From the NCBI GenBank assembly GCA_965644265.1, contig OZ286462.1, forward strand, positions 32,798,001 through 32,862,000: a stretch of DNA of 64,000 bases, given 5' to 3'. The DNA comes from Glycera tridactyla. Lineage: Eukaryota. How positions within the stretch are numbered: position 1 is the first letter of the stretch; each line of letters starts with the position of its first letter. A program made the position numbers and the translations under genes. Under the pieces are notes generated by a model that saw only the letters and a list, made by a program, of their open reading frames with translations, was not told the DNA's origin and made no database searches. Shown one piece after another: positions 1 to 55,481 of the stretch.

Positions 1-66
1 TTTATTACTGTGGGACATAAAGCTGGGAAGATCGACGACATTTACCACATCACTACTACTCTACAT

Positions 67-81
67 GTTTTGATCCATCAG
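67..81 (+). pseudogene. 15-nt micro-exon homologue with dead acceptor (would encode GFDPS)
   Basis: ctactctacat|GTTTTGATCCATCAG|gttata; CAG changed to CAT. Confidence 0.45.
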
Positions 82-466
82 GTTATAGTTATTGCAACAC
101 CAGTGAAATCACAAGAGGATTGAGCATTAGTCTGACATCGGTTCAGCTGCTGCAGCAATCAATCTCTGCATTATGATATGGTGCACTTGTCTTTTGCAGA
201 ATATTGAATTAACGAGTAAGAGGTATCCACATGAAATCACTGTATAGACTGAATAGGAGATGATACTGAGCTCTATATATTATTGTGCTGAAGACAGGGG
301 CTTGCCAGCTATAAGCCATTTTCTATTCAATGGAGTTCATGTGTTCCTAAATCTTGGATATCAGTGATGCAAAGAGGCCATGAAAAATGAAAAGCCCCTG
401 ATATACCTCATACCCTATTTCAAAGTTCAGTGTGAAAGAATATGTTTCATTTTATTCATTCATCAG

Positions 467-3400
467 AGTCAAATGTCACAGAGGACACAGGACCAACGAC
501 AGAGACAATCACAGCAGGTCAGTATCAGATTAGCGACCGATAGTCTAACCCTGCTTACAACAACAGTCTGCCTGTCTGAATTCGTCAGTATCGATGATGA
601 GGCAACCATAGAGATGATCGAACTTCATTGCAGTGCCCTGATGTTGAGACAATGATATGATCACGCTTCTAATCTCCATGATTAGCCACAATGAGACCAA
701 CTGTCTGACTAACCTGATTAGCGAAGATGGTCTATCCCTGGTCGAATATGATAAGCATATTTGTCAGGTTCTAAGAACAAAAATGATAGAAGATACTTGT
801 GACAGTCGCATGTCAGCTAAAAGCCAATCTTTATTCAATGAAGTTCACCTGTGCCGACATCTCGAATATCAGTGATGCCAAGAGACCTGAGAAGAATGAT
901 ATATCTCTTACAAGTTCAGTGTAAAAGAGTATGTTGCATTTGATTCATTCATCAGAGTCAAATGTCACAGATCACACTGGACCGACAACAGAGGCAGTCA
1001 CAGTAGGTCAGTATCGTTTAACCCTGCTTACAACAATAGAATGTCTGAATTCTGCACTGCCAATGATGTGACAATCAAAGAGATGATCGAACTCCATTGC
1101 AATGCACTGACCGAGAGGCAATGATAAGACCATCCTCCTAATTTGCATGATTATACACAGTTGGACATTCTATCTGACTTCCACAATTACCAAAAATGGC
1201 CTCCTCTGAACAAACATGATGAGCATATTCTTCAGATTCTGATGAAAAACATGACGCGTAGACTTTTATTAGCCTACCTGTTGTCTTCCCAACTGACTTA
1301 ATATTCTTTATCGGACATAGACCAACCAAAACATATTCAGCAATTGAAAGTATGTTCATCATCTGCCCCACTAGGATACTTTCTTCTGATATCAGAGGTT
1401 GCTGTCTTGTTAATCTCTCCGATATTATCATATCACCACCACCATCAATTTTGACTTGTCCATGCTGCTCACTCTCAGCATATCTACCCTAACTATTATA
1501 TCAACACCACTAACCGCCACCATATACGCATTGTAATTCTTAGCCACTTTTGCCTTGTGTGAGACATGAATCAGAGAATATTGACGACACTCACTGACCA
1601 CATACCTTTCTTCCTGAAGGTACTGAACGATCAGGTTGTGGTCATGTCACTGACTGGCCAATTTACACTAGGAACACTGATTGATGATTTTCTAACCACG
1701 ATAGCATCAATGCAACATCAGACTCCAGCACTGTTGACGATTAGTCGATCAATAAAGATGCATGAACTGAGATGCAAGAAACCAACAATGAGTCAATTAG
1801 GGAGGAGGCCCCTCTATAGTGTAATAAGGCACACCCATTGATAGATGACTATGAGGATCATTGAGTGAATATGTATTACAGATCACGACATGAGGATAAA
1901 ATCTCTCTTCGAAAGAATATGGCTCATTCCACCAAAGGGATATTATGACATGAAGCTGAATCAGTATCTAAATTTAAGGCCGGATAATGTCGAGCTCTAT
2001 ACCATAGTGCTCATAATTTCAATGGTGACGATCATATGTTAGCCAAGAACCCATTGCATAGGTCATATGTGCTTGCAATACAAATTGGATATTAGCCGAA
2101 TACACGAACTTCACAAATGGGTGGAAGATGTAGGCTTCATCTGATACTATATGTCAATACTTGATGTGGGGAAGTATAATTTTTTCTCCATTTATCATAT
2201 GTGAATGTGACAGACGACACAGGACCGACTACAGAGGCAATCACAGCAGGTCAGTGTATCAGCTGATTAGCTGATAGCTTAACCTTGCTAACATCAAAAC
2301 TATATCTAAATCATGCACCGTCGAACATCAGTCAAACATATGAATGATTCAAAATCAATGCAGTGCACCAATGGCGAGACTACGCTGAGATCATCTACAT
2401 AATTTTCATGATAGATCATGAGTTGACAAGCCATTTGATTAGCCAGAATAACGGAATTATCATCCCTATGAACTCAGGGGAGATAGATGACATTTGCCAC
2501 ATTATTACTTCTCTCCAGGGACTGATCTTTCGGGTTATAAATATAGAATACTCCAGTGAAATCACAACACGATTGAACATCAGTCTGACAACAACTCACC
2601 TGCAGCAGCAATCAATCTCTGCTTTATGATATGGCGCACTTGTCTTTAGCCGAATGTTGATTCAATGTGTAAGATGTAATCACTAAAACTCAATATATGT
2701 TCTCAATGGTAGATGACACTGAGCTATATATATATTATTGTGCTGGTGACAGTCGCATGTCAACTAAAAGCCATTTTCTATTTAATGGAGTTTATGTGTT
2801 CCTACATCCTGGATATCTTTGATGCAAAGAGGCCATTAAAAATGGAAAGCTCTGGATATATCTCATACCCTTTTTCGAAGTTCAGTGTGAAAGTGTATTT
2901 TGAATTTCATCTATTCATCAGTGTCAAATGTCACAGAAGACACCGGACCAACGACAGAGACAGTCACAGCAGGTCAGTATCAGATTTCCGACTGATAATC
3001 TAACCCTGCTTACAATAACAGAATGTCTGAATTTCTTAGTATCGATGATAAAACAACCATAGAGATAATCGAAATTTATTGCAGTGTCCTGATTGTGAGA
3101 CAATGATGTGATCAAGCTTCTAATTTCCATGATCAGCCACAATTAGACCAACTGTCTGACTTACCTGATCAGCAAAGATGGTCTATCCCTGGTCAAATAT
3201 GATGAGCATATTCGTCAGGTTCTAATGAAATCCATGATAGGAGATGATACTAGTGACAGTCGCATGTCAGCTAGAAGCCATTTTTCATTAAATGGAGTTC
3301 ACCTGTGCCTACATCTTGGATATAAGTGATGCGATCAGACCTGATAAGAATAAAAAGATCTGGATATACCTCATACCATATTTCAAAGATCAGTGTCGAA

Positions 3401-6400
3401 GAGTATGTTTCATTTTATCCATCCATCAGAGTCAAATGTCACAGATCACACTGGACCGACAACAGAAGCAGTCACAGCAGGTCAGTATCAGATCACTGAC
3501 TGAGAGTTTAACCCTGCTTACAACAACAGGATGTCTGAATTCTGCACAGCAAATGATGAGACAATCACAGAGATGAACGAACTTTATTGCAATGCACTGA
3601 TCATGAGGCAGTGATAGGATCATCCTCCTAATTCGCATGATTATACACAATTAGACCATATATCTGACTTCCACGACTACCAAAGATGGCCTTCTCTGAT
3701 ATAGCATGATGAGCATTTTCTTCAGATTCTGATGAAAATATGACGTGACTATTCTTGTTATTTTCGTGACTATCTCTGACTGGCCTTTTATTAGCCTAAA
3801 TGTTGTCTTCCCAACTGACTCAATACTTTTTACCGGATATAGCTCAACCAAAACATATACTTAAGCAATAGGAAGTATGCTCATCATCTGACTCACTAGG
3901 ACACTTTGTTCTGATATCAGAGGAGGCTGTCTTGTTAATCTCTCTGATATCATCATATCATCACCGACATCAACATCATTTTTCACTTGTCCATGCAGCT
4001 CACTATCAGCATACCGTCTCTTGCCATCATATCAACACCACTAACCGTCACCATATACTCATTGTAACTCTCATCCCACTTTTGGCTTTGCGAGACATGA
4101 ATTTGAGAATATTGACGACACTCACTAACCAAATAACTATCTCTCTGAAGGTACTGAACTATCAGACTGTGGTCATGTCATTGACTGGCTGATTCACACT
4201 AGGAACACTGATTCATGATCTGTTGACCAAGGTAGCATCAATGCCACATCAGACTCCGGCACTGTCAAAGATTGGTCAATAAATACAGATGCAGAAACCA
4301 ATAGTCAGGCAATGAGGAGGGACGGTCCTCTATAGTGGAAAAAGGCACACTCATTGGCAGTTGGCTATAAGGATCATTGAGTGAGTATGGATTGCAAATC
4401 ACAACATGAGGATAACGTCTCTTCTCGAAAGAATATGGCTCATTCCACCAAAAGGGTCATTATCACACCAAGCCAAGTCAGTATCTCAATTCAAGGCCAG
4501 ATAATGTCAAGCTCCATACTGAAGTGTACATTGTTTCAATGGCTACGATCAAATGTCAGCCGAAAACACATTGCATAGGTCACATGTGCCTAAAATGCAA
4601 ATTGGGTATCAGCAGAATGCAGCAACTTTACATATGGAAGGAAGATGCAGGGTTTATCTGATACTATATGTCAATGGTGGATGTGGAGGAGAATAATTTT
4701 TTTCTCCATTTATCAGATGTGAATGTCACAGACAACACAGGACCAACTACAGAGGCAGTCACAGCAGGTCAGTGTATCAGCTGATTAGCTGATAGCTTAG
4801 CCTTGCTAACATAATTGAAACATCTGAATCATGCATCGTCAAAGATCAGTCAAACATAGGAATGATTCAAATTCATTGCAGGGCACCAATGCCAAGACTA
4901 CGATGAGATCATTTTCATAATTTCCATGATGAGTCATGATTTGACAATCCCTATGATTTCAAAGAATAACCAAATTAGCATGCCTATGAACACAGGTGAA
5001 ACACATACATTCTGTGTTCAGGAAAAGTTCTGACAAAAGCAACTCTCATAATTCTTCCAAATAATCATGACAACCCCATTTCCGATATTTAGAATCAGTC
5101 TTCTTTCGAATTTGATGACTGCCAATGCCAATACTACTACAGATCCACCGATTTGATATACATTCCAAAATATCTCCTTCCTCGAAAAACTTTCTTCGAA
5201 ATCTGAATGTCCGCCCATCATTCATGCCTTGATGATGCTTTGCCCTGCTTTCTCTGAATGATGACTCGTGATATCTCAGAATCTATATCATCATTTAAAT
5301 ATACCTTCTCTCCATGCATATTCATCACTGTTTTTATATTCACCCACTTCGCCATTACTACCAGTCACCATATACACATTGTAGTTCTTTTCCAATGTGG
5401 GTTTTCATTTCTGTGGGACATGAATTAGGGAAGATTGACAACATTTATCATGCTATTACTCTACAGGTTTTGATCTCTCAGGTAATATTATAGCATATAC
5501 CAGTGAAATCAAAACAGGATTGAGCATTAGTCTGACATCAGCTCAGCTGCAGCAGCAATCAATCTCTGCGTTGCAATATGGCACACATGTTTTCAGCAGA
5601 ATATTGAGTAAATGAGTAGGATGTATTCACTTGAAATCACTATATTGACTCAAAAGAAGATGACACTGAGCTCTATAAATTATTGTGCTGATGACAGCCG
5701 CATGCCAGATTCTAATGGAGAATATGCTAAGAGATGATACATGTGACATTCACATGTCAGCTAAAAGCCAATTCATATTCAATGGAGTTCATGTTTACCT
5801 ACATCTGAGATATCAGTGAAGGAAAGAGGATATAAAAAGTGAAAACGTCAGGATATATCTCATACCCTTTTTCAAAGTTCAGTGTGAAAGAGTATGTTTT
5901 CATTTTATTCATCCATCAGACTCAAATGTCACAGAGGACACAGGACCGACAACAGAGACAGTCACATCAGGTCAGTATCAGATTAATGACTGATAATCTA
6001 ACCCTGCTGACAGCAACATAATATCTGAATTCCTCAGTATCGATGATAAAATAATCATAGAGATGAATAACTTTATTGCAGTGCCCTGACGGTTGGACAA
6101 TTATATGATCAAGCTTCTGATTTCCATGATTAGCCACAGCTAGACCAACTGTCTGACTCACTTGATTAGCGAAGTAGGTCTATCTCTGGTCGAATATGAT
6201 GAGCATATTCATCAGATTCTGATGATGAACATGCTAAGAGATGATACATGTGACATTCACATGTCCGCTAAAAGCCAATTTATATTCAATGGAGTTCAGC
6301 GGTGCCTACATCTTGGATCTGAGTGATGCAAAGAGACCTGAAGAGAATGAACAGCTCAGCATGATCTCTTACCATATTTCAACGTTCAGTGTGAAAGAGT

Positions 6401-9400
6401 ATGTCTCATTTTATTCATCCATCAGAGTCAAATGTCACAGATCACACTGGACCGACAACAGAAGCAGTCACAGCAGGTCAGTATCAGATGACTGACTGAG
6501 AGTTTGACCCTGCTTACAACAACAGAATGTCTCAATTCTGCACTGCAAATGATAAGACAATCATAGAGATGATCGAACTTTATTGCAATGCACTGATCAT
6601 GAGGCAGTGATAAGATCATCCTCCTAATTCGCATGATTATACCCAATTAGACCATACATCTGACTTCCACGATTACCAAAGATGGCTTTCTCTGATATAG
6701 CATGATAAGCATTTACTTCATATTCTGATGAAAAATATGACGTGACTATTCTTGTCATTTTCGTGACCATCTCTGACTGGCCTTCTATTAGCCTAAATGT
6801 TGTCTTCCCAACTGACTCAATACTTTTTACCGGATATATATCAACCAAAACATATACTTCAGCAATTGGAAGTATGCTCATCATCTGCCTCACTAGGACA
6901 CTTTGTTCTGATATCAGAGGAGGCTGTCTTGTTAATCTCTCTGATATCATCATATCATCACCGACATCAACATCATTTTTCACTTGTCCATGCAGCTCAC
7001 TATCAGCATACCGTCTCTTGCCATCATATCAACACCACTAACCGTCACCATATACTCATTGTAACTCTCATCCCACTTTTGGCTTTGCGAGACATGAATT
7101 TGAGAATATTGACGACACTCACTAACCAAATAACTATCTCTCTGAAGGTACTGAACAATCAGACTGTGGTCATGTCATTGACTGGCTGATTCACACTAGG
7201 AACACTGATTCATGATCTGTTGACCAAGGTAGCATCAATGCCACATCAGACTCCGGCACTGTCAAAGATTGGTCAATAAATACAGATGCAGAAACCAATA
7301 GTCAGGCAATGAGGAGGGACGGTCCTCTATAGTGGAAAAAGGCACACTCATTGGCAGTTGGCTATAAGGATCATTGAGTGAGTATGGATTGCAAATCACA
7401 ACATGAGGATAACGTCTCTTCTCGAAAGAATATGGCTCATTCCACCAAAAGGGTCATTATCACACCAAGCCAAGTCAGTATCTCAATTCAAGGCCAGATA
7501 ATGTCAAGCTCCATACTGAAGTGTACATTGTTTCAATGGCTACGATCAAATGTCAGCCGAAAACACATTGCATAGGTCACATGTGCCTAAAATGCAAATT
7601 GGGTATCAGCAGAATGCAGCAACTTTACATATGGAAGGAAGATGCAGGGTTTATCTGATACTATATGTCAATGGTGGATGTGGAGGAGAATAATTTTTTT
7701 CTCCATTTATCAGATGTGAATGTCACAGACAACACAGGACCAACTACAGAGGCAGTCACAGCAGGTCAGTGTATCAGCTGATTAGCTGATAGCTTAGCCT
7801 TGCTAACATAATTGAAACATCTGAATCATGCATCGTCAAAGATCAGTCAAACATAGGAATGATTCAAATTCATTGCAGGGCACCAATGCCAAGACTACGA
7901 TGAGATCATTTTCATAATTTCCATGATGAGTCATGATTTGACAATCCCTATGATTCCAAAGAATAACCAAATTAGCATGCCTATGAACACAGGTGAAACA
8001 CATACATTCTGTGTTCAGGAAAAGTTCTGACAAAAGCAACTCTCATAATTCTTCCAAATAATCATGACAACCCCATTTCCGATATTTAGAATCAGTCTTC
8101 TTTCGAATTTGATGACTGCCAATGCCAATACTACTACAGATCCACCGATTTGATATACATTCCAAAATATCTCCTTCCTCGAAAAACTTTCTTCGAAATC
8201 TGAATGTCCGCCCATCATTCATGCCTCGATGATGCTTTGCTCTGCTTTCTCTGAATGATGACTCGTGATATCTCAGAATCTATATCATCATTTAAATATG
8301 CCTTCTCTCCATGCATATTCATCACTGTTTTTATATTCACCCACTTCGCCATTACTACCAGTCATCATATACACATTGTAGTTCTTTTCCAATGTGGGTT
8401 TTCATTTCTGTGGGACATGAATTAGGGAAGATTGGCAACATTTATCATGCTATTACTCTACAGGTTTTGATCTCTCAGGTAATATTATAGCATATACCAG
8501 TGAAATCAAAACAGGATTGAGCATTAGTCTGACATCAGCTCAGCTGCAGCAGCAATCAATCTCTGCGTTGCAATATGGCACACATGTTTTCAGCAGAATA
8601 TTGAGTAAATGAGTAGGATGTATCCACTTGAAATCACTATATTGACTCAAAAGAAGATGACACTGAGCTCTATAAATTATTGTGCTGATGACAGCCGCAT
8701 GCCAGATTCTAATGGAGAATATGCTAAGAGATGATACATGTGACATTCACATGTCAGCTAAAAGCCAATTCATATTCAATGGAGTTCATGTTTACCTACA
8801 TCTGAGATATCAGTGAAGGAAAGAGGATATAAAAAGTGAAAACGTCAGGATATATCTCATACCCTTTTTCAAAGTTCAGTGTGAAAGAGTATGTTTTCAT
8901 TTTATTCATCCATCAGACTCAAATGTCACAGAGGACACAGGACCGACAACAGAGACAGTCACATCAGGTCAGTATCAGATTAATGACTGATAATCTAACC
9001 CTGCTGACAGCAACATAATATCTGAATTCCTCAGTATCGATGATAAAATAATCATAGAGATGAATAAACTTTATTGCAGTGCCCTGACGGTTGGACAATT
9101 ATATGATCAAGCTTCTGATTTCCATGATTAGCCACAGCTAGACCAACTGTCTGACTTACTTGATTAGCGAAGTAGGTCTATCTCTGGTCGAATATGATGA
9201 GCATATTCATCAGATTCTAATGAAGAACATGCTAAGAGATGATACATGTGACATTCACATGTCCGCTAAAAGCCAATTTATATTCAATGGAGTTCAGCGA
9301 TGCCTACATCTTGGATCTGAGTGATGCAAAGAGACCTGAAGAGAATGAACAGCTCAGCATGATCTCTTACCATATTTCAACGTTCAGTGTGAAAGAGTAT

Positions 9401-12400
9401 GTTTCATTTTATTCATCCATCAGAGTCAAATGTCACAGATCACACTGGACCGACAACAGAAGCAGTCACAGCAGGTCAGTATCAGATGACCGACTGAGAG
9501 TTTGACCCTGCTTACAACAACTGAATGTCTCAATTCTGCACTGCAAATGATAAGACAATCATAGAGATGATCGAACTTTATTGCAATGCACTGATCATGA
9601 GGCAGTGATAAGATCATCCTCCTAATTCGCATGATTATACCCAATTAGACCATATATCTGACTTCCACGATTACCAAAGATGGCTTTCTCTGATATAGCA
9701 TGATGAGCATTCACTTCATATTCTGATGAAAAATATGACGTGACTATTCTTGTCATTTTCGTGACCATCTCTGACTGGCCTTCTATTAGCCTAAATGTTG
9801 TCTTCCCAACTGACTCAATACTTTTTACCGGATATATATCAACCAAAACATATACTTCAGCAATTGGAAGTATGCTCATCATCTGCCTCACTAGGACACT
9901 TTGTTCTGATATCAGAGGAGGCTGTCTTGTTAATCTCTCTGATATCATCATATCATCACCGACATCAACATCATTTTTCACTTGTCCATGCTGCTCACTA
10001 TCAGCATACCGTCTCTTGCCATCATATCAACACCACTAACCGTCACCATATACTCATTGTAACTCTCATCCCACTTTTGGCTCTGCAAGACATGAATTGG
10101 AGAATATTGACGACACTCACTAACCAAATAACTATTTCCCTGAAGGGACTGAACTATCAGACTCTGGACATGTCATTGATTGGCTGATTCACACTAGGAA
10201 CACTACTTCATGATCTGTTGACCAAGGTAGCATCTATACAACATCAGACTCCTGCACTGTCAAAGATTAGTCAATAAATACAGATGCAGAAACCAATAGT
10301 CAGGCAATGAGGAAGGACGGTCCTCTATAGTGAAAAAAGGCACACTCATTGGCAGTTGGCTATAAGGATCATTGAGTGAGTATGGATTGCAAATCACAAC
10401 ATGAGGATAACGTCTCTTCTCGAAAGAATATGGCTCATTCCACCAAAAGGGTCATTATCACACCAAGCCAAGTCAGTATCTCAATTCAAGGCCAGATAAT
10501 GTCAAGCTCTATACTGAAGTGTACATTGTTTCAATGGCTACGATCAAATGACAGCCGAAAACACATTGCATAGGTCACATGTGCCTAAAATGCAAATTGG
10601 GTATCAGCAGAATGCAGCAACTTTACATATGGATGGAAGATGTAGGGTTTATCTGATACTATATGTCAATGGTGGATGTGGAGGAGAATAATTTTTTTCT
10701 CCATTTATCAGATGTGAATGTCACAGACAACACAGGACCAACTACAGAGGCAGTCACAGCAGGTCAGTGTATCAGCTGATTAGCTGATAGCTTAGCCTTG
10801 CTAACATAATTGAAACATCTGAATCATGCATCGTCAAAGATCAGTCAAACATAGGAATGATTCAAATTCATTGCAGGGCACCAATGCCAAGACTACGATG
10901 AGATCATTTTCATAATTTCCATGATGAGTCATGATTTGACAATCCCTATGATTTCAAAGAATAACCAAATTAGCATGCCTATGAACACAGGTGAAACACA
11001 TACATTTTGTGTTCAGGAAAAGTTCTGACAAAAGCAACTCTCATAATTCTTCCAAATAATCATGACAACCCCATTTCCGATATTTAGAATCAGTCTTCTT
11101 TCGAATTTGATGACTGCCAATGCCAATACTACTACAGATCCACCGATTTGATATACATTCCAAAATATCTCCTTCCTCGAAAAACTTTCTTCGAAATCTG
11201 AATGTCCGCCCATCATTCATGCCTCGATGATGCTTTGCTCTGCTTTCTTTGAATGATGACTCGTGATATCTCAGAATCTATATCATCATTTAAATATGCC
11301 TTCTCTCCATGCATATTCATCACTGTTTTTATATTCACCCACTTCGCCATTACTACCAGTCATCATATACACATTGTAGTTCTTTTCCAATGTGGGTTTT
11401 CATTTCTGTGGGACATGAATCAGGGAAGATTGACAACATTTATCATGCTATTACTCTACAGGTTTTGATCTCTCAGGTAATATTATAGCATATACCAGTG
11501 AAATCGAAACAGGATTGAGCATTAGTCTGACATCAGCTCAGCTGCAGCAGCAATCAATCTCTGCGTTGCAATATGGCACACATGTTTTCAGCAGAATATT
11601 GAGTAAATGAGTAGGATGTATCCACTTGAAATCACTATATTGACTCAAAAGAAGATGACACTGAGCTCTATAAATTATTGTGCTGATGACAGCCGCATGC
11701 CAGATTCTAATGGAGAATATGCTAAGAGATGATACATGTGACATTCACATGTCAGCTAAAAGCCAATTCATATTCAATGGAGTTCATGTTTACCTACATC
11801 TGAGATATCAGTGAAGGAAAGAGGATATAAAAATTGAAAACGTCAGGATATATCTCATACCCTTTTTCAAAGTTCAGTGTGAAAGAGTATGTTTTCATTT
11901 TATTCATCCATCAGACTCAAATGTCACAGAGGACACAGGACCGACAACAGAGACAGTCACATCAGGTCAGTATCAGATTAATGACTGATAATCTAACCCT
12001 GCTGACAGCAACATAATATCTGAATTCCTCAGTATCGATGATAAGATAATCATAGAGATGAATGAACTTTATTGCAGTGCCCTGACGGTTGGACAATTAT
12101 ATGATCAAGCTTCTGATTTCCATGATTAGCCACAGCTAGACCAACTGTCTGACTTACTTGATTAGCGAAGTAGGTCTATCTCTGGTCGAATATGATGAGC
12201 ATATTCATCAGATTCTAATGAAGAACATGCTAAGAGATGATACATGTGACATTCACATGTCCGCTAAGAGCCAATTTATATTCAATGGAGTTCAGCGGTG
12301 CCTACATCTTGGATCTGAGTGATGCAAAGAGACCTGAAGAGAATGAACAGCTCAGCATGATCTCTTACCATATTTCAACGTTCAGTGTGAAAGAGTATGT

Positions 12401-15400
12401 TTCATTTTATTCATCCATCAGAGTCAAATGTCACAGATCACACTGGACCGACAACAGAAGCAGTCACAGCAGGTCAGTATCAGATGACCGACTGAGAGTT
12501 TGACCCTGCTTACAACAACTGAATGTCTCAATTCTGCACTGCAAATGATAAGACAATCATAGATATGATCGAACTTTATTGCAATGCACTGATCATGAGG
12601 CAGTGATAAGATCATCCTCCTAATTCGCATGATTATACCCAATTAGACCATATATCTGACTTCCACGATTACCAAAGATGGCTTTCTCTGATATAGCATG
12701 ATGAGCATTCACTTCATATTCTGATGAAAAATATGACGTGACTATTCTTGTCATTTTCGTGACCATCTCTGACTGGCCTTCTATTAGCCTAAATGTTGTC
12801 TTCCCAACTGACTCAATACTTTTTACCGGATATATATCAACCAAAACATATACTTCAGCAATTGGAAGTATGCTCATCATCTGCCTCACTAGGACACTTT
12901 GTTCTGATATCAGAGGAGGCTGTCTTGTTAATCTCTCTGATATCATCATATCATCACCGACATCAACATCATTTTTCACTTGTCCATGCTGCTCACTATC
13001 AGCATACCGTCTCTTGCCATCATATCAACACCACTAACCGTCACCATATACTCATTGTAACTCTCATCCCACTTTTGGCTCTGCAAGACATGAATTGGAG
13101 AATATTGACGACACTCACTAACCAAATAACTATTTCCCTGAAGGTACTGAACTATCAGACTGTGGACATGTCATTGATTGGCTGATTCACACTAGGAACA
13201 CTGCTTCATGATCTGTTGACCAAGGTAGCATCTATGCCACATCAGACTCCTGCACTGTCAAAGATTAGTCAATAAATACAGATGCAGAAACCAATAGTCA
13301 GGCAATGAGGAAGGACGGTCCTCTATAGTGAAAAAAGGCACACTCATTGGCAGTTGGCTATAAGGATCATTGAGTGAGTATGGATTGCAAATCACAACAT
13401 GAGGATAACGTCTCTTCTCGAAAGAATATGGCTCATTCCACCAAAAGGGTCATTATCACACCAAGCCAAGTCAGTATCTCAATTCAAGGCCAGATAATGT
13501 CAAGCTCTATACTGAAGTGTACATTGTTTCAATGGCTACGATCAAATGACAGCCGAAAACACATTGCATAGGTCACATGTGCCTAAAATGCAAATTGGGT
13601 ATCAGCAGAATGCAGCAACTTTACATATGGATGGAAGATGTAGGGTTTATCTGATACTATATGTCAATGGTGGATGTGGAGGAGAATAATTTTTTTCTCC
13701 ATTTATCAGATGTGAATGTCACAGACAACACAGGACCAACTACAGAGGCAGTCACAGCAGGTCAGTGTATCAGCTGATTAGCTGATAGCTTAGCCTTGCT
13801 AACATAATTGAAACATCTGAATCATGCATCGTCAAAGATCAGTCAAACATAGGAATGATTCAAATTCATTGCAGGGCACCAATGCCAAGACTACGATGAG
13901 ATCATTTTCATAATTTCCATGATGAGTCATGATTTGACAATCCCTATGATTTCAAAGAATAACCAAATTAGCATGCCTATGAACACAGGTGAAACACATA
14001 CATTTTGTGTTCAGGAAAAGTTCTGACAAAAGCAACTCTCATAATTCTTCCAAATAATCATGACAACCCCATTTCCGATATTTAGAATCAGTCTTCTTTC
14101 GAATTTGATGACTGCCAATGCCAATACTACTACAGATCCACCGATTTGATATACATTCCAAAATATCTCCTTCCTCGAAAAACTTTCTTCGAAATCTGAA
14201 TGTCCGCCCATCATTCATGCCTCGATGATGCTTTGCTCTGCTTTCTTTGAATGATGACTCGTGATATCTCAGAATCTATATCATCATTTAAATATGCCTT
14301 CTCTCCATGCATATTCATCACTGTTTTTATATTCACCCACTTCGCCATTACTACCAGTCATCATATACACATTGTAGTTCTTTTCCAATGTGGGTTTTCA
14401 TTTCTGTGGGACATGAATCAGGGAAGATTGACAACATTTATCATGCTATTACTCTACAGGTTTTGATCTCTCAGGTAATATTATAGCATATACCAGTGAA
14501 ATCGAAACAGGATTGAGCATTAGTCTGACATCAGCTCAGCTGCAGCAGCAATCAATCTCTGCGTTGCAATATGGCACACATGTTTTCAGCAGAATATTGA
14601 GTAAATGAGTAGGATGTATCCACTTGAAATCACTATATTGACTCAAAAGAAGATGACACTGAGCTCTATAAATTATTGTGCTGATGACAGCCGCATGCCA
14701 GATTCTAATGGAGAATATGCTAAGAGATGATACATGTGACATTCACATGTCAGCTAAAAGCCAATTCATATTCAATGGAGTTCATGTTTACCTACATCTG
14801 AGATATCAGTGAAGGAAAGAGGATATAAAAATTGAAAACGTCAGGATATATCTCATACCCTTTTTCAAAGTTCAGTGTGAAAGAGTATGTTTTCATTTTA
14901 TTCATCCATCAGACTCAAATGTCACAGAGGACACAGGACCGACAACAGAGACAGTCACATCAGGTCAGTATCAGATTAATGACTGATAATCTAACCCTGC
15001 TGACAGCAACATAATATCTGAATTCCTCAGTATCGATGATAAGATAATCATAGAGATGAATGAACTTTATTGCAGTGCCCTGACGGTTGGACAATTATAT
15101 GATCAAGCTTCTGATTTCCATGATTAGCCACAGCTAGACCAACTGTCTGACTTACTTGATTAGCGAAGTAGGTCTATCTCTGGTCGAATATGATGAGCAT
15201 ATTCATCAGATTCTAATGAAGAACATGCTAAGAGATGATACATGTGACATTCACATGTCCGCTAAGAGCCAATTTATATTCAATGGAGTTCAGCGGTGCC
15301 TACATCTTGGATCTGAGTGATGCAAAGAGACCTGAAGAGAATGAACAGCTCAGCATGATCTCTTACCATATTTCAACGTTCAGTGTGAAAGAGTATGTTT

Positions 15401-33400: not shown

Positions 33401-36400
33401 ATCAGAGTCAAATGTCACAGATCACACTGGACCGATAACAGAAGCAGTCACAGCAGGTCAGTATCAGATGACTGACTGAGAGTTTGACCCTGCTTACAAC
33501 AACAGAATGTCTGAATTCTGTACAGCGAATGATGAGACAATCATAGAGATGATCGAACTTTATTACAATACACCGATCATGAGGCAGTGATAAGATCATC
33601 CTCCTAATTTGCATGATTATACCCAATTGGACCATATATCTGGCTTCCAAGATTACCAAAGATGGCTTTCTCTGATATAGCATGATGAGCATTTACTTCA
33701 GATTCTGATGAAAAATATGGCGTGACTATTCTTGTCATTCTCGTGACTATCTCTGACTGGCCTTTTATTAGCCTTGTCTTCCCAACTGACTCGATATTTT
33801 TTTACGAGATGTAGCTCAACCAAAACATATACTTCAGCAATTGGAAGTATGCTCATCATCTGCCTCACTGGGACACTTTGTTCTGATATCAGATGAGGCT
33901 GTCTTGTTAATCTCTCTGATATCATCATATCATCACCGACATCAACATCATTTTCCACTTGTCCATGCTGCTCACTATCAGCATAATGTCTCTTGCCAAC
34001 ATATCAACACCACTAACCGTCACCATATACTCATTGTAACTCTCATCCCACTTTTGTCTTTGCTAGACATGAATTGGAGAATATTGATGACACTCACTAA
34101 CCAAATAACTATTTCCCTGAAGGTACTGAACTATCAGACTCTGGTCATGTCATTGACTGGCTGATTCACACTAGGAACACTGATTCATGATCTGTTGACA
34201 AAGGTAGCATCTATGCCACATCAGACTCCTGCACTGTCAAAGATTAGTCAATAAATACAGATGCAGAAACCAATAGTCAGGCAATGAGGAAGGACGGTCC
34301 TCTATAGTGAAAAAAAGGCACACTCATTGGCAGTTGGCTATAAGGATCATTGAGTGAGTATGGATTGCAAATCACAACATGAGGATAACGTCTCTTCTTG
34401 AAAGAATATGGCTCATTCCACCAAAAGGGTCATTATCACACCAAGCCAAGTCAGTATCTCAATTCAAGGCCAGATAATTCAAGGCCAGATATATAACACA
34501 TAACCTGGTTTCTCCATCAAATTATGCATTCATTCTTATTGAATCGCCTACTTCGAACTTTTGATACAATTAAAAATCTTTCTCTCAGATGTCACCATCC
34601 CTCCCTCCGTTATCACAGTGCTCCTCGTGCAAACCGGCGTAACTACGCTCGCCAAGTAAACAAACGTGTGCATGCGCAACTCGTATTTTTCCCTTTCACT
34701 TCGCAATAACGGAGGTTTTGATATTCTAATAGTGTTTTACCGAAATTAGTAGGTAAAGTCATCGCGCCCGCTTTCGAGCTTATATGTACTGTTTTATAAG
34801 CATCTTAGCTGTGTTCTGCCGCATACTGCGCTCGTGCTTTGTGTTTGCTTGTACAGATATGGTGAACTTTGTGTCGAGTTGACAGATATCGTGACCTCAG
34901 ATAAGCTTTGAAATGACCTGATCCGATTCATCCGTTCGTGGGTCTATGAATTTCATATCATTTCAGGTGATGTCTACAGAAAGTCACAATTCACTAAAAG
35001 GAGGCCTTTGCGGCCATTATCTTGCAGTATGGGACGATCATCCTGTTTGCCCCTCATGTCGTCCATATGGAGGTTCATGTGGGTGGGCTGGAGTTGATGA
35101 GGTGCTGTGCAATATTTGTACCTCATGGACTCAAGAACAGTGGAAGAAACATGTCGGTAGAAGGACTTATAAGTCAAAGTTCAAACCCAAAGCTGAGACT
35201 AAAGTTTCTGAGTCTTCTAGGTGCTCCACAGCTCGTCCCCAAGCTGAGTCTAGTACGCTTGCTAGAACTAGGGTTACTAGACCAGCTTCAGTGACTAGGG
35301 AGGTAGTAGGTCCCGAATCTTGGAAGAGATTGTCTAAGACCAAACAGATGTCCGGTGAAGTGGAGACCTCTTCTTCCCCAGTTTCACATAGTCTTCCGTC
35401 TGTCTGTCCAGTTGAGAGTCCGGTAAAGAGGGACCGCGGTCAGACCGAAAGGAGTGAGACTTCAATTAGTAAGAGTGTCCGGTCGATGGAAGGTCCTAAG
35501 AGAGTTATCTTGTCCGGACATTCTCAGAAGTCCACGCATTCTAGAAGTAGTGCGTTGGGTGTGTCGGGTGTGTCGGGTGTGTCCAGTACTCCCGGTGTGT
35601 CTGGCATGCCTGGTAGGTCTGGTGTGGCTGGTATGTCCGGTGTGTCTGGCTTGTCTGGTATGTCCGGTATGTCTGGTGTGTCCGGTATGTCAGGAATGTC
35701 CGTTGGGTCCGGTGTGTCCAGTGGGTCCGGCAGATCCGGTAAACTTCAAGGGGCCGGTACTACTGAGCTCCATACTGGAACTAAGTAGACGAGGGATTGG
35801 TCGGTTGATACTGGGTAGGCAGAATCATCCAGTAACTCAGAGAAATCTTTTAGAGCAGTAATCCAGCCTGAGACTCATGCTACTAAGTCTGGTGGTGATT
35901 CAGTCAAATCTAGTAGAATTGGAGTTTCTGGTGGTCATGCGAGCTCGCATGAATCGCAAAATATACCAGTGGATAAGGTGGATTCGCACAGAGATAGTTC
36001 TCTGGCAAAGTCAACAGGTCTTCTGCATCTGGTGCTAAGTCTGATATTAGACCTTCTGTCTTGAATAAGTCTGGTACAGGTTTGGTCCTATCTGGCAGTC
36101 CAGTAGAGTCAGATATTCCGACTCACTTCGAGGGTCAGGTCAGTTTGTCAAGTGCCTCGGAAGTGTCAGTTCAGATATCTGATTTATCAGTGAATCTACC
36201 TGGTAAGGTTAGAGAGTCTGACAGTGTGAAGATTATGGATTCTGATAGAGGTAGATCTAAGTTGAGGTCACCAGCCGTGCATAGGTCTACATCTCATGTA
36301 CATAAAGTTGAGTCCCACCCTGTACATAAATCTAGTAGGGACTCTGTTCGATCATCGAGTAAACATTCTGATATAGTTATCCGTTCATCACATGAATCTC

Positions 36401-39400
36401 CGGCTAAAGGTTCATCATCTAAGAGTCTAGGACAGTTAGTTCAGTTAGTTCTGGGAGGTCTACCTCCAAGTTGGATGATCAGGGGTTTAAGATCCCTTGT
36501 ATGTCTTCTAGCTCTTCTAAGATCAGAAATAGTAGTCTACCTCCTGAGGATGATGATAGTAAGATACAGGGAAATGGAGTGTCGGATCAACAAGCTCAGG
36601 GCTATGCCACAGCATTTCTTGTAACTTCTGCTTTATTACCAGGCCAGGAGCATATCCAGATTATTGCGGCTCCTGGATTGTCAGTGGAAGATGCAGAGTC
36701 CTTGGCGGTCCCTGGATCACACGGTATAGTTGATGCGTCACAAGCGAGAGATATCTTTGCCTCTTTTGGTAGGCAGATAGTTCGTGCTGAGGAAGCTGTG
36801 AGAGAGGGAGCTTCTCTCTCATAGAGGTTTGCAGTAAGGAAACCAGATCCGGCTAAACAGTTGATTACAGATGTAATTCATGAGTGTCTGTCAGGACCTA
36901 AACTCTCTTGGGAGTTGTTTGGTCAAGATTCAGACGAGTCGCAAGTAACCTTTCAGGTAACTTCCAATGAGGATAAGGTACAGTTGCCTGTACATAGTCA
37001 TAGTGTTTTTGTTCCAACTCAGGGTACGGTATTTCAGGTGGAATACAAACAAACAACTACTCCTTTAATGATGGATATAGAGTCTCAGGAAGTTATTTCT
37101 GATTCAGGGTCTGATCAACCAGGCTCAGTCCAGGAACCAGGTGGGGTTTCTGAGGGATCCCACAGTTTCTCCAGTTCCTTTGTTAGATCTGCAGGTTGTT
37201 TCTCCACAGCCTGATGCTTCTATTTTGGCTAAGGTAGAATCTCTCAGAGGGGAAGTCAGAATTCTGAGGGAAAGAGATATTAGAAAGAGGTCACATGATG
37301 AGAGTGTTTCTGTTGTGTCTGGAGAGTCAGAAGAGGAGGATAGACCTGATGTAAAGAGAAGGATGTCTTTCTTCAGAAGGTTTGCTTTGGAGACTTTGAC
37401 CAATATCATCAAAGATCCTGACCCCATTTCCAGAGAGGGCATCGGTATTTCATCAGGGAAATTTGACACTTTGTTTGCGGCTTGTGGACGAAGTAAGGAT
37501 ATTGATTTCCTTATTGATAGCTCTCTTCCAATTTCGCCTCTAGTTGGCAATGTTCAGAAGATCATGGACAGAGCTTTATATGGGAGGAAAGAGAATGAAA
37601 CTCCACAGTCTTGGGAGGTTCCGTTGGCAAAGGAGGGAGGACGGAAGCCCTTTCTAACACCTTCAAGAGCTCTCAACCGCGAATTTATGGCTGCAATTCG
37701 CGAGTTTATAAGCTCAGGCCCTCAGAGGATAGATCAAAGTTTGTAGTTACTTCACCACAAATTGATCCTGATTATTCGGAGCGTGGTAATGCATCAAAAT
37801 CTGATCTCAAGCCTAGTCAGCAGGAGGCTATTCTTAGGGATAGCCTTAAAGTGTTGTCCTATATAGATATTGCTCTCGCTACTGGTTTGACGGTAGCTGA
37901 GGGAGAGGATAAGTCTCCCGAAACTTGGGAGAAAGCTAGAGAGGCCATAGGGGAGGCCTACATGCTGTCGAACATGTAGCGATTATGGTCGGCAAGGTGG
38001 TGGGAAATTTAGAGCTAGCCAGAAGATCGGTGGCTCTAAAGTCAATGAAGTTTGACACTGATGTCAAAGCCAAATTACGGACTCTTCCGTTGGGCCAGGG
38101 ATTTCTGTTTGGGGGGGAAACTGGACGAAGCCAGTGATATAGCTGCTGAGAGGGCCCTCAAAAGAAGGAATATTGAGCTGGATTCTAGTAAGGCTAAATC
38201 TAAAGAGTCTAAGCCTTACAATTCCTCTATGTCTTCAACAAACTGGTGTGGAATGAAGAAGAAGAGAGGCTCTGGTGGAATGGGCCATGGTAGGCGTAGG
38301 GGTCAGAATGTGAACCAAGAGGCAGATCATCAGCCACAAATTCAGGTGACTGTTCCTGGTAAAGCAGCTCCTGAAGATTCTGGCAAGAGATTCTTCAAGA
38401 AGAAGGGTCGCGAAAGAGCTTCTCAGCTCTATGGGGACGCGCATCACTCCTGCAATGATTGTGGGAGCGAGGTTGTCTGCATTTGCAGGAGAATGACAGA
38501 ATCTAACGACAAACAGATTTATCTTGAACATTGTTAGATCAGGCCTGTCTTGGGTTTTCAAGGAGAATCCAATATTATCTCCAACTTGGCATCCCTCTGC
38601 TCTTTCGAAGAAGGGCCATTTGAAGAGGGAGGGTGTGCTGGAAGAGGTTCAATGTATGCTAGACAAGGTGGCGATTGTTCCTATTTATCAGGACGGGTCG
38701 GCAAGGTTTTACAGCAGGACATTTCTGGTAACAAAGGCAACAGGGGGATATCAACCCATTATAAATTTGAAACATCTGGATCAACACATATACAATCAGA
38801 GATTGGAAATGGAGACTTCTCGGTCGATAGTGCAAGCCGTCTCTTCGGGCAATTGGACAGTATCCATCAACCTCAAGGACGCTTACATTCATGTCCCCAT
38901 CAATCCGGAGTTCCAGAAGTACCTGTGGTTTGCCCTGTCGTCCACACAGGCTTTTCAGTTCAGGGCCCTGCCGTTCAGCTTGTGCACTTCCTCTTGCATC
39001 TTTACAATGCTAGTAAGGGAAGTGGTGCAACATTTACATGCCAGAGGGATGAAGTTTCATTTTCACCTGGACGACTGGCTGCTCAGACACCAGAACCCAG
39101 AGAACTTAGCATCCCACCCTTAAGTACACTCTCGAGTTTGCATGCAAACTAGGTTGGATCATAAACGACAAGAAATCGGACTTGGTTCCCAGTCAGCATT
39201 TGTCTATCTGGGGATCGAGTTCGACACAGAATCGTTCTTGGTCTTTCCCACTCTGTCCAGAGTAGAGAGGATGGAATGTTGGGTTCGGCTATTTCGACGG
39301 GTTCTCGAGCAGCCAGCTTGTTCACTTCTGAAATTACTCAGCCATATGTCAAGTCTCTCAGACACAGTTCATCTAGGCTGATTACATATGCGCCCCATTC

Positions 39401-42400
39401 AGATGGCTCTTTTGAGCCAGTGGAAGCCATTCTCAGACCATCCAGACCAGCTAGTCAGCCTACCTGTGGAGGTCCAGACCAATTTGTTATGGTGGGCCTC
39501 CAGAGAGAATACAAGGAAAGGAGTTCCCTTATCTGTCCTGGAGCCCTCAGTCAACCTTCTGACGGATGCTTGGTTGGAAGGCTGGGGAGCTCATCTGGTG
39601 GTGGGAGACCAGAGAATTCAGATTTCTGGGATATGGTCTCAGAGTCACCGAGGTCATTCAATCAACAGTCTAGAGTTAGAGACAGTTCTTCTAGCTCTTC
39701 AAGGCTTCTCAGAACATCTCCTGGGACAAGTGGTTCTTCTTTCAGACAACGCCACCACAAAATCATGTATTCAAAATCAGGGGGGACAGATTTGAGTCTT
39801 CTATGGGGTCTGACATGGCAGATATTCTCTCTGACAGAGAGCCTCAACGTGTTACTGAGAGCTCGACATATTCCAGGAAAACACAATGTTCTGGCTGACG
39901 CATAATCTCGTCAGGAGCCAGTTCAAACAGAGTGGGAACTACTGCAATCAGTTTTCCAGGGAGTAGTAGAGCATTTCAACCTGTCTCCAACAGTCATTCT
40001 CATGGCGACTCCTCACAACAGCAAGCTTCCGGTGTTCATGTGCCCGTTTCCGGACCCATCTGCTCTCGAGGTGGACGCGCTTTCCATGTCTTGGAAGGGT
40101 CTTGGGACGGCATATGTTTACCCACCAATAGCTTTAGTGAGGGATGTGGTCAACAAACTGAGAGGACTGGAGCTGGTTCTGATTTGCATAGCTCCCTGAT
40201 GGCCAAACCAATCTTGGTTCCCAGACCTCCTGGAGTTGTCCACAGATCTTCCAGTGGAGCTGCCTCTCCCTCGGGACCTGTTAATTCAGAAGATCAGAGG
40301 AAAGGTATTCAACGACTGGAAACCCCAAGTGCTCTCTCTGCACGCTTGGTGTCTGTGTGGTCAGCCCTCAGCCGCCAGGGCTTTTCAGCAAAGGTGGTTG
40401 AGTGGATCTCTGGATCTACCAGACCATCCACTACCAAGGTCTATGATACCAGATGGTCTGGATGGTAGGCTTGGTGTTCTACCCACAGGGTGGATAAAGA
40501 GCATCCCTCTATGGCGCAGTTAGGAGATTTCTTTATTGAATCATGGGAATCTGGTCTCGCTCTTGAGACAGTAAAGGGCTACCGTTCAGCCATAGGTTCA
40601 GTTTTATCCCGTTTTGGAATTAAAATTTCGGATTCTAGTGAGATTACTGATCTTTTCAGAAAATTTTCACTTGAATGGCCTGTCACTCCTAAAGTTGTCC
40701 CTCGCCAGATAGATCGTCTCTGATTATTGAGATTCAGGCATCATCAGGAGTTCCTGATATTTCGGAAGATGATTCGAGTCTTTTTATGTAGATCATCTAC
40801 ACTTCAGCTTTAGAAGAAGATTGTTCTTCGACCCCTCTTCTATCTCTCAGAAAGAGATGAGGGCTGCTGTTCTATTCAAATGGATTATGGATGTTGTTAA
40901 GGGCGCATACCTCAGGGCTGATAGAGAGGAAGAGTTAATGGATCATATGCCTGCTCACAAACTCAGGGCTCTCTCTGCATCCTGGAAAATGTTCAATAGG
41001 TCTTGTTCTGTTGGTGATATTATGCGCTCAGCTTCCTGGCGTTCTGGACGTACATTTGAAAATTATTATTTACGGGATATGTGTGGGCAGGCTATGGATT
41101 TGTATTCACTGGGTCCTATTGTGGCTGGACAAGCAGTGGTCTCTCCGCCTGCCCTCACTGATTAGTTTTCTTTCTCTCTAACCCACCATCCGTGGTATAT
41201 GCGTATGCATAATTTGATGGAGAAACCAGTTATTTGTTAACCCCCCCAGGTTCGCTTGCTAACTTGGGAGTTAACACTTTACCTGTTTCTCCATGAAATG
41301 GTATTTTCCCTCCTATCCTCCCCTGTGTGTGTATATAGTGTATATTGTTGTTATTTACGAGTTGCGCATGCACGCGTTTGTTTGAGTGGCGAGTGTAGTT
41401 CCACCGGTTTGCACGGGGAGCGCTGTGATAACGGATGGAGGGATGGTTACATCTGAGAAAAAGATTTTTAATTGTATTAAAAGTTCGAAATGGGCGATTC
41501 AATGAGAATGAATGCATAATTTGATGGAGAAACAGGTAAATGTTAACTCCCAGGTTAGCAAGCAAACCTGGGGGGAATTAGTTAATAAATACAGATGCAG
41601 AAACCAATAGTCAGGCAATGAGGAGGGACCGTCCTCTATAGTGGGAAAAGGCACACTCATTGGAAGTTGACTATAAGGATCATTGAGTGAGTATGGATTG
41701 CAAATCACAACATGAGGATAACGACTCTTCATGAAAGAATATGGCTCGTTCCACCAAAAGGGTCATTATCACACCAAGCCAAGTCAGTATCTCAATTCGA
41801 GGCAAGATGATGTCAAGCTCTATACTGAAGTGTACATTATTTCAATGGCTACGATCAAATGTTAGCCGAAACACATTGCATAGGTCATATGTGCCTGGAA
41901 TGTAAATAGGGTATCAGCAGAATGCAGCAACTTTACATATGGATGGAAGATGTAGGGTTTATCTGATACTGTATGTCAATGGTCGATGTCGAGGAGTATA
42001 ATTTTTTCTCCATTTATCAGATGTGAATGTCACAGACGACACAGGACCAACTACAGAGGCAGTCACAGCAGGTCAGTGTATCAGCTGATCAGCTGATAGC
42101 TTAGCCTTGCTAACATAATTGAACCATCTGAATCATGCACCGTCAAAGATCAGTCAAATAATCATGACAACCTCATCTCTGATATTTGAATTAGTCTTCT
42201 TTCGGATTTGATGACTGCCAATTCAATACTACTACAGATCCACCGATTTGATATACATTCCGAAATGTCTCCTTCCTCGAAAAACTTTCTCCGAAATCTG
42301 AATGTCCGCCCATCATTCACGCCTTGATGATGCTTTATTTTGCTTTCTCTGAATGGTGACTCTTGATGTCTCGGAATCTGTATTATCATTTAAATATGCC

Positions 42401-45400
42401 TTCTCTCAATGCATATTCATCACTGTTTTTATATCCACCCACTTCGCCATTACTACCAGTCATCATATACACATTGTAGTCCTTTTCCAATGTTGGTTTT
42501 CATTTCTGTGGGACATGAATTAGGGAAGATTGACAACATTTATCATGCTATTACTCTACAGGTTTTGATCTCTCAGGTAATATCATAGCATATACCAGTG
42601 AAATCACAACAGGATTGAGCATTAGTCTGACATCAGCTCAGCTGCAGCAGCAATCAATCTCTGCGTTGTAATATGGCACACATGTTTTCAGCAGAATATT
42701 GAGTAAATGAGTAGGATGTATCCACTTGAAATCACTATATTGACTCAAAAGAAGATGACACTGAGCTCTAAATATTATTGTGCTGGTGACAGCCGCATGC
42801 CAGATTCTAATGAAGAATATGCTAAGAGATGATACATGTGACATTCACATATCAGCTAAAAGCAAATTTATTTTCAATGGAGTTCATGTTTACCTACATC
42901 TGAGATATCAGTGAAGGAAAGAGGATATAAAAATTGAGAACCTCAGGACATATCTCATACCCTTTTTCGAAGTTCAGTGTGAAAGAGTATGTTTTCATTT
43001 TATTCATTCATCAGAGTCAAATGTCACAGAGGACACAGGACCGACAACAGAGACAGTCACAGCAGGTCAGTATCAGATAAATGACTGATAATCTAACCCT
43101 GCTGACAGCAACATGATATCTGAATTCCTCAGTATCGATGGTATAAAAATCATAGAGATGAATGAACCTTATTGCAGTGCCCTGACGGTTAGACAATTAT
43201 ATGATCAAGCTTCTAATTTCCATGATTAGCCACAGCTAGACCAACTGTCTGACTCACTTGATTAGCGAAGTAGGTCTATCTCTGGTCGAATATGATGAGC
43301 ATATTCGTCAGATTCTAATGAAGAACATGGTAAGGGATGATACATGTGACATTCACATGTCCGCTAAAAGCCAATTCATATTCAATGGAGCTCACCGGTG
43401 CCTACATCTTGGATATAAGTGATGCAAAGAGACCTGAAGAGAATGAACAGCTCAGCATAATCTCTTACCATATTTCAACGTTCAGTGTGAAAGAGTATGT
43501 TTCATTTTATTCATCCATCAGAGTCAAATGTCACAGATCACACTGGACCGACAACAGAAGCAGTCACAGCAGGTCAGTATCAGATGACTGACTGAGAGTT
43601 TGACCCTGCTTACAACAACAGAATGTCTGAATTCTGCACAGCAAATGATAAGACAATCATAGAGATGATCGAACTTTATTGCCATGCACCGATCATGAGG
43701 CAGTGATAAGATCATCCTCCTAATTCGCATGATTATACCCAATTAGACCATATATCTGACTTCCACAATTACCAAAGATGGCTTTCTCTGATATAGCATG
43801 ATGAGCATTTACTTCAGATTCTGATGAAAAATATGACGTGACTATTTTCGTCATTTTCGTGACTATCTCTGACTGGCCTTCCATTAGCCTAGATGTTGTC
43901 TTCCCAACTGACTCAATACTTTTTACCGGATATAGCTTAACCAAAACATATACTTCAGCAATAGGAAGTATGCTCATCATCTGCCTCACTAGGACACTTT
44001 GTTCTGATATCAGAGGAGGCTGTCTTGTTAATCTCTCTGATATCATCATATCATTACCAACATCAACATCATTTTTCACTTGTCCATGCTGCTCACTATC
44101 AGCATACCGTCTCTTGCCATCATATCAACACCACTAACCGTCACCATATACTCATTGTAACTCTCATCCCACTTTTGGCTTTGCGAGACATGAATTGGAG
44201 AATATTGACGACACTCACTAACCAAATAACTATTTCCCTGAAGGTACTGAACTATCAGACTGTGGTCATGTCATTGACTGGCTGATTCACACTAGGAACA
44301 CTGGTTCATGATCTGTTGACCAAGGTAGCATCAATGCCACATCAGACTCCTGCACTGTCAACGATTAGTCAATAAATACAGATGCAGAAACCAATAGTCA
44401 GGCAATGAGGAAGGTCGGTCCTGATTTCATCTTAATGGTGTAACATTTTGGTAGACTGCATGTCTGCATTATGAAGTCTGCATTCCCAGCTAAATTGCTT
44501 CATTAGCCATAGATGCTTATTCATCATGACGAAGTAACTAACGTTTGCCCTGACAGGATTTTCAACTCTAATAGATGTACCTCTCGATATACTTTTTGAA
44601 ATACAGAAAAACCTACGTCTCAGCAAAGGAGAAGATAAGCAACTTGAGAAGACAGAGATTCTGTATGATAATCAATGATATCCGCAGTACCAATATAGAA
44701 TCAGAGGTTTTTCGCAGTACTCGAGCACTAATTTTGATGAGTATGGTATCATATCCATGTTACATTGTCTTTTACTGTGTTTACTATCTCTGCTATCAGA
44801 TATAGGCATCAGATGGCAGAACATAATCATGTATGATGCAAAAAACCGCATCTGTTGGTGAATGTATGTGAAAATTCAATAGTTCCCATTTGGCCACCAG
44901 GCGGCTCTGGGTGCTGGGTTCCATATCTGAAATTGCTTGTTGGGGGTCAACGATCATTCATGCCAAGTTTCATGCTTTTTACCCAAAGTGCATGGTTTTT
45001 CCCTTATCTGCCCCACTATAAGTATATTTGGCAATGAAGTTACATGCCAAAACTAGGAAAAGTGGAGTAGCTGAAACTTTGCATTTCTTGTGTGCAGACT
45101 TTTTCAACAGATGTGGCGAATGCAGTCTGCACTAAATATGAGACCGAGGGTATTGTCTGTGCTCCAAAACTGTTTGTTTGTTCTCACAACTGCAGGATTC
45201 GACAAATTTTTCTTCATCTGTTCTTCGTTTAGGTGGAGCGAAATTTTCATCTGTCCTCCCTGTCATTCTCACCTTCCCTCCTGCGTATAATCATAGGCTG
45301 AATAACTGTTAGGTACCTGCCATCGGGCAGGCAGACTCATAAAATCACCTGCCCTATCAATCAATCCACATGTCTGTGCCAGTAGGGCAACCCTTATCGT

Positions 45401-50466: not shown

Positions 50467-50508
<42 letters not shown>

Positions 50509-50906: not shown

Positions 50907-50978
<72 letters not shown>

Positions 50979-55447: not shown

Positions 55448-55481
<34 letters not shown>

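Follow-up and report, generated by a model that had tools for sequence, protein, structure and literature searches.

A 3-kb tandem repeat in Glycera tridactyla as a probable exon array for a Thr-rich glycoprotein stalk

We analysed a 64,000-nucleotide (nt) window of the Glycera tridactyla genome (GenBank assembly GCA_965644265.1, contig OZ286462.1, positions 32,798,001 to 32,862,000 of the forward strand), in which an array of 3-kb tandem repeats carrying short exon-like segments is followed by candidate exons for cysteine-rich modules. Coordinates are those of the window, which is AT-rich (GC about 0.39). Nearest-neighbour distances between 20-mers (a k-mer autocorrelation) peak at 2996–2999 bp, giving a repeat unit of about 2998 bp; Tandem Repeats Finder, with periods limited to at most 500, missed it. 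The window start falls within the array, and array homology runs to about 44422, so that the end set at 43572 by the original prediction, a reading made from the letters alone, has to be moved.

The array combines highly homogenised core units with more divergent edges. Pairwise identity among core units U1–U9 (4717–31695) is 97.4–99.9%, introns included. The two left units have BLAST identities of about 79% and 88%, with numerous gaps. The 3' half of left unit 2 is homogenised with the core, and a sliding-window search of edge against core for unique conservation minima was uninformative. The right unit has about 95% identity and a deletion of roughly 200–210 bp. Divergence had been claimed for both edges; this is correct for the left, whereas the right unit differs from the core by only about 4%. 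Each 2998-bp unit contains three whole exon-like segments, designated types A, B and C, together with their introns. Start-to-start spacing is 1203 nt from A to B, 506–507 nt from B to C and 1288 nt from C to A. The coding share is 153/2998, or 5.1%, close to the 5–6% given earlier. The longest open reading frame (ORF) inside the unit was searched against Pfam, without a match.

All intact segments have the same boundaries. A search of the whole window for CAG, 51 nt and GTNAGT returned exactly 37 matches, all on the + strand, from 467–517 through 43522–43572. Every match has a T-rich (pyrimidine) tract ending in CAG in front and a GTCAGT donor behind, as the original prediction had described for three 51-nt segments per unit. 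The donor context CAG/GTCAGT agrees with the consensus CAG/GTRAGT at eight of nine positions. In each segment, the complete codons are preceded by two bases and followed by one, corresponding to phase-1 introns on both sides. The segments are thus symmetric (51 nt, phase 1-1), and the frame survives changes in copy number. The encoded peptides are D-V-N-V-T-D-N-T-G-P-T-T-E-A-V-T-A for type A, D-S-N-V-T-E-D-...-T-V-T-S for type B and E-S-N-V-T-D-H-...-A-V-T-A for type C. These are the peptides that had been proposed, and their frame contains no stop in any of the 37 copies.

A mismatch-tolerant scan revealed a 38th copy at 2199–2249, whose acceptor is CAT instead of CAG. This copy is probably skipped in splicing, and its loss would be harmless for the frame because the exons are symmetric. 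The claim that edge units preserve both exon length and splice sites therefore holds for length, as there are no exon indels, but not for every splice site. The 38 copies represent only 15 distinct sequences (edge variants and about three old lineages), and the openness of 37 copies therefore does not amount to 37 independent tests. When a core unit was filtered for phase 1-1 segments with a pyrimidine tract and GTNAGT, the three claimed segments passed; the sole extra match was a 93-nt variant of exon B with an alternative acceptor. That acceptor is an in-frame AG 42 nt upstream (14871–14912, with the same place in other units). The longer form would add 14 residues, and the paralogous site before exon C has no AG.

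The exons are conserved relative to their introns. The three types are old paralogues, the flanks of which can still be aligned at 64–79% identity. In comparisons of A with B and of A with C, identity in a 51-nt window on the exon is 0.80. Shifting the window 4 nt over the donor raises it to 0.86, the highest value within ±400 nt, and the median over that range is 0.59–0.61. Pooled paralogue divergence is 17.6% in exons versus 30.4% in ±250-nt flanks (p = 4e-4). Indels had been reported in the introns, and the paralogue alignments bear this out, with 48 events in the flanks versus none in the exons, where 5.2 would be expected (P(0) = 0.006). Left-edge units compared with the core show 18/255 mismatches in exons versus 380/2389 in ±250-nt flanks (p = 4e-5), that is, 7% versus 16%. 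The right unit was dropped as evidence of constraint, as an apparent intron divergence of 11.6% proved to be misalignment around its deletion.

Changes within the exons are also unevenly distributed among codon positions, with minimum counts of 15 at third, seven at first and five at second positions (third-position excess, p = 0.014). Differences between types in the N-V-T and T-G-P-T-T-E motifs are all synonymous (AAT/AAC, GTC/GTG, ACA/ACT/ACC, CCA/CCG, ACT/ACA/ACG and GAG/GAA). Three amino-acid changes in these motifs each occur in a single copy: N to D at 29900, G to E at 18418 and T to I at 33406. Among the 15 variants, a minimum spanning tree has 14 synonymous and 20 non-synonymous changes, with 27% expected to be synonymous (p = 0.058), and the synonymous excess is seen in the claimed frame only. 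Taken together, these comparisons indicate coding constraint on the exons compared with the introns.

The 37 exons, when joined in phase 1, total 1887 nt and 628 codons without a stop, which agrees with the approximately 630 residues originally predicted. The repeat has the 17-residue form x-N-V-T-[DE]-x-T-G-P-T-T-E-x-V-T-x. The joined product is 31.4% T, 14% V, 10.5% E, 9.4% D, 5.9% P and 5.6% S; it has no K, R, C or aromatic residue, and its net charge is about -124. An N-V-T sequon is found in 36 of 37 copies, precisely as claimed, the exception being the copy at 29900, which reads D-V-T. Thr, Ser and Pro together make up 42.9% of the 628 residues, compared with the roughly 40% or more in tandem repeats that characterises mucin-like (PTS) sequences. 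The suggestion of a mucin-like glycoprotein stalk is therefore supported with respect to composition, which fits an acidic, Thr-rich and sequon-bearing stalk. Judging from the motifs, each repeat likely bears one N-glycan sequon and an O-glycan cluster. A literature search on the peptide motifs yielded nothing relevant.

Downstream of the array, about 14 phase-compatible candidate exons on the + strand (47431–63270) form roughly nine Cys modules (Table 1). A module either is a single phase 2-2 exon or consists of a 2-1 and a 1-2 exon with a phase-1 intron between them. Each phase-2 donor of the chain has a Cys codon plus 2 nt directly in front. Between 44422 and 64000, this configuration precedes 11 of 17 GTRAGT sites on the + strand and three of 15 on the - strand. 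Several modules have the half-module spacing C-x7-C-x~20-C. The presence of Cys-rich modules suggests an extracellular, presumably secreted, protein. The modules are orphans, with no relatives in Pfam, HMMER or ESM Atlas searches; Pfam was run on 10 downstream ORFs. All-against-all BLASTP of the downstream open segments gave microsatellite noise only, and a single-sequence AlphaFold model of E9 had a predicted local distance difference test (pLDDT) score of 44 and was unusable. No convincing membrane-spanning exon was found downstream. One apparent candidate, at 48207–48314, was rejected as a translated pyrimidine tract.

The connection between array and modules depends on the first exon of the chain, E1. 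The downstream Cys exons mentioned in the original prediction are mostly phase 2-2 and not 1-1, and a link in one reading frame works only via E1, which is entered in phase 1 and left in phase 2 and is therefore able to take the stalk and pass to the modules. The openings of E1 and E12, (D)-V-C-N-V-[TS], correspond to the stalk-exon opening (D-V-N-V-T) plus a Cys. This resemblance suggests a possible origin of the stalk exons in the 5' portion of a half-module exon of this kind. No signal-like first exon, defined by ATG, a hydrophobic stretch and a phase-1 donor, was found in 43573–47431, which makes a single gene the simplest reading.

Other features lie in the presumed introns. A decayed retroelement with frameshifted ORFs, on the same strand as the array exons, interrupts the array and affects no exon. 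Array homology stops at unit position 2793 (34483) and restarts at unit position 2553 (41577). Both flanks of the retroelement thus carry the same stretch of about 240 nt of intron, which far exceeds the usual target-site duplication. Decayed ORFs resembling a long interspersed nuclear element (LINE), without a Pfam match, occupy 45500–47100 on the + strand, between the last stalk exon and E1. The presumed intron between E11 and E12 contains a CA-microsatellite-rich 372-bp tandem duplication (61548–62290, two copies, 98% identical). Five N runs of 147–173 nt fall in the Cys-module region (52966–53137, 53441–53587, 53923–54095, 60572–60720 and 63287–63439) and may hide further exons.

Table 1. 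Positions of the array, its stalk exons and the downstream candidate exons within the 64-kb window.
Feature	Position	Strand	Remarks
Tandem array	1..44422	+	2 diverged left units, 10 core units, 1 right unit; retroelement-interrupted
Stalk exon type B, left edge unit 1	467..517	+	regular-expression match
Stalk exon type C, left edge unit 1	956..1006	+	regular-expression match
38th copy, type A, broken acceptor CAT	2199..2249	+	frame open, N-V-T kept
Stalk exon type B, left edge unit 2	2922..2972	+	regular-expression match
Stalk exon type C, left edge unit 2	3430..3480	+	regular-expression match
Ten core units, 30 stalk exons of 51 nt	4717..33456	+	regular-expression matches
Type A core starts	4717, 7714, 10712, 13710, 16708, 19706, 22702, 25698, 28697, 31696	+	
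Type B core starts	5920, 8917, 11915, 14913, 17911, 20909, 23905, 26901, 29900, 32899	+	
Type C core starts	6426, 9424, 12422, 15420, 18418, 21414, 24410, 27408, 30407, 33406	+	
Decayed retroelement, reverse-transcriptase ORF	34484..41576	+	Pfam RVT_1; inside C-to-A intron
Stalk exon type A, right unit	42021..42071	+	regular-expression match
Stalk exon type B, right unit	43015..43065	+	regular-expression match
Last stalk exon, type C, right unit	43522..43572	+	regular-expression match
E1, candidate linking exon, phase 1 to 2	47431..47527	+	opens D-V-C-N-V-T, ends Cys-x before GTGAGT
E2 candidate, phase 2-1	about 47925–48022	+	acceptor uncertain
E3 candidate, phase 1-2	48397–48505	+	
E4 candidate Cys-module exon, phase 2-2	51238..51486	+	strong splice sites
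E5 candidate, phase 2-1	51830–51900	+	
E6 candidate, phase 1-2	52632–52737	+	
E7 candidate, phase 2-1	53162–53280	+	
E8 candidate, phase 1-2	53717–53795	+	
E9 candidate Cys-module exon, phase 2-2	54303..54545	+	strong splice sites
E10 candidate Cys-module exon, phase 2-2	58254..58517	+	strong splice sites
E11 candidate, phase 2-1	60916–61031	+	
E12 candidate, phase 1-2	62543–62636	+	opens V-C-N-V-S
E13 candidate, phase 2-1	62868–62998	+	
E14 candidate, phase 1-2	63168–63270	+	

We consider it quite probable that the 3-kb repeat is the middle of a long + strand animal gene, in which tiny in-frame exons would form a glycoprotein stalk. That the repeat is an exon array, as originally proposed, is itself likely on evidence internal to the sequence: the conservation peak, the lack of exon indels, the third-position excess, the uniqueness of the three exons under the filter and their phase. 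Exons would be recognised through the pyrimidine tract and CAG acceptor, a purine-rich and T-poor body (11% T in exons versus 30% in introns) and the CAG/GTCAGT donor. Splicing of all 37 would yield at least 628 residues of 17-residue repeats, a presumably disordered, strongly acidic and Thr-rich spacer. The last stalk exon would then be spliced over about 3.9 kb to E1, which would move the phase from 1 to 2 and begin the orphan Cys-module series. The extended, presumably heavily glycosylated stalk would keep the Cys modules apart from whatever the N-terminal part attaches to. Unequal crossing-over between 3-kb units would change stalk length in steps of 51 residues; the frame would be kept because exons and introns are co-amplified and every exon is symmetric.

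Several observations weigh against this interpretation. A donor with C at +3 is uncommon, one acceptor (the 2199 copy) and one sequon (the 29900 copy) are lost, and the 5' end of the gene, with its start codon and any signal peptide, lies outside the window. The same-strand retroelement of about 7 kb and the LINE-like fragment, both in introns, might provide early transcript ends. Among the tests of constraint, the synonymous/non-synonymous comparison is marginal, and the pairwise divergence tests have branches in common. Exon and intron divergence do not differ among core units (0.6% versus 0.9%); since these copies are so similar, and hence young, their intactness is little evidence. Nor is the exon-intron contrast significant in the right unit. 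Homology searches add nothing in favour: E9 against 1.84 billion representatives gave four spurious matches to bacterial low-complexity proteins, a homologue search with E10 and an ESM Atlas search with the Cys modules gave none, and the 51-residue spliced peptide had no match in a word-index search of proteins of 28–89 residues.

Some of these observations are shared with an alternative that we regard as unlikely, namely that the array is a dead coding satellite. Three exons of a formerly functional gene would have been amplified recently and would no longer be spliced into mRNA; the youth of the copies alone would account for their open frames, and the signal of constraint would predate amplification. 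The near-identity of core units, with no difference between exon and intron divergence, would be expected of such a satellite, and the blank protein searches, the lost acceptor, the three non-synonymous singletons, the lost sequon and the same-strand retroelements within the array also agree with it. The left edge argues otherwise. Introns there have diverged by 15–20% since duplication but exons by 7%, and the exons have kept their length, their frame and five of six splice-site pairs. Furthermore, the exon phase suits the downstream chain, for which no other first exon was found.

Less probable still is that the exons are real but build no fixed stalk, being either a pool of cassettes included in variable subsets or part of an upstream gene that ends before 47431, with a separate Cys gene beyond it. 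Any subset of symmetric exons would be in frame, and every donor is GTCAGT, which departs from the consensus at +3, yet no exon apart from the 2199 copy is marked as weaker in its sequence. Similarly, the Cys modules are in phase 2 rather than phase 1 and the 3.9-kb gap (43572–47431) contains a LINE-like fragment, but E1 starts in phase 1 with an opening motif common to the stalk exons, and the gap lacks a signal-peptide-like first exon. A non-coding host gene comparable to the SNORD115/116 or miRNA-cluster arrays, with short exons as spacers and an intronic product, has a similar tandem exon-plus-intron layout but is highly improbable, given that the window has no Rfam family at gathering score (one unit gave a sole match with E ≤ 1, at chance level), that the unit has neither tRNAs nor hairpin-forming inverted repeats, that conservation between the old paralogues peaks on the exon and not in the introns, and that changes are biased by codon position.

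Should the exons prove to be spliced, some 44 kb that would be masked as satellite by any annotation based on ORFs or repeats would be the central coding part of a large glycoprotein gene, and gene sets of this genome would miss a whole protein class. The invisibility of such genes to ORF-based and repeat-masking annotation is the main practical value of the locus. The locus would likewise be a clean, independent case in which unequal crossing-over between units of exons and introns changes protein length over evolution, and a natural setting in which to study the recognition of 51-nt exons with a non-consensus donor, 37 in succession. More speculatively, and with considerable doubt, homogenised exon-intron macrosatellites could be a general means of building length-tunable glycoprotein stalks in a free-living invertebrate. 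Copy number would vary between individuals and exon skipping within them, giving an orphan Cys family a repertoire of stalk lengths, and the stalk exons would have originated in the 5' portion of a half-module exon belonging to that gene. This would place diversity like that of the SmPoMuc mucins outside the parasitic flatworms. On its own, the locus overturns nothing, because the principle has been documented for SmPoMuc and for LPA.

The locus shares its architecture with several known systems. Variable number tandem repeats of vertebrate gel-forming and membrane mucins are Thr/Pro-rich and form glycosylated, extended domains encoded in one large exon. The present array differs from these, as the original prediction had stated, in its 5% coding share and its one repeat per exon. 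The novelty of this arrangement was overstated, however, since in SmPoMuc of Schistosoma mansoni mucin repeats are encoded one per small exon within genomic tandem repeats of about 1 kb (PMC2576457). There, units number up to about 20 and their introns are more than 94% identical; each unit has a single 27-bp exon encoding a 9-residue repeat, GA microsatellites lie between units, and splicing has been verified with cDNA (PMC2576457). SmPoMuc is the closest documented case, and both loci jointly amplify exons and introns with a mucin-type repeat in each exon. In contrast, the present array has 51-nt exons, three diverged exons per 3-kb higher-order unit, an N-V-T sequon per repeat and orphan Cys modules, and is known from genomic sequence alone. 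The resemblance is architectural, with no sequence homology seen or claimed, and the two loci are analogous, not homologous.

Human LPA provides a second comparison. Its kringle IV-2 repeat is a coding macrosatellite of near-identical, multi-kb, in-frame units of whole exons and introns, the copy number of which determines protein length. The two exons of an LPA unit specify a folded kringle domain, whereas the unit described here would encode a low-complexity stalk that is predicted to be glycosylated. Schistosome micro-exon genes (MEGs) encode secreted proteins mostly through very short exons separated by long introns (PMC10526429, PMC4350168), with exon sizes of 3–81 bp (PMC10526429). Unlike those of the present array, their exons are not homogenised tandem copies of one unit, and their variation arises by exon skipping. 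MEG exons, too, are symmetric. NBPF/Olduvai triplets, titin PEVK, nebulin exon blocks and the spider Flag silk gene follow partly the same logic. To all of these the present array is analogous, not homologous. The Glycera locus is distinguished by a higher-order unit of three exons, an N-glycan sequon in each exon and orphan Cys modules.

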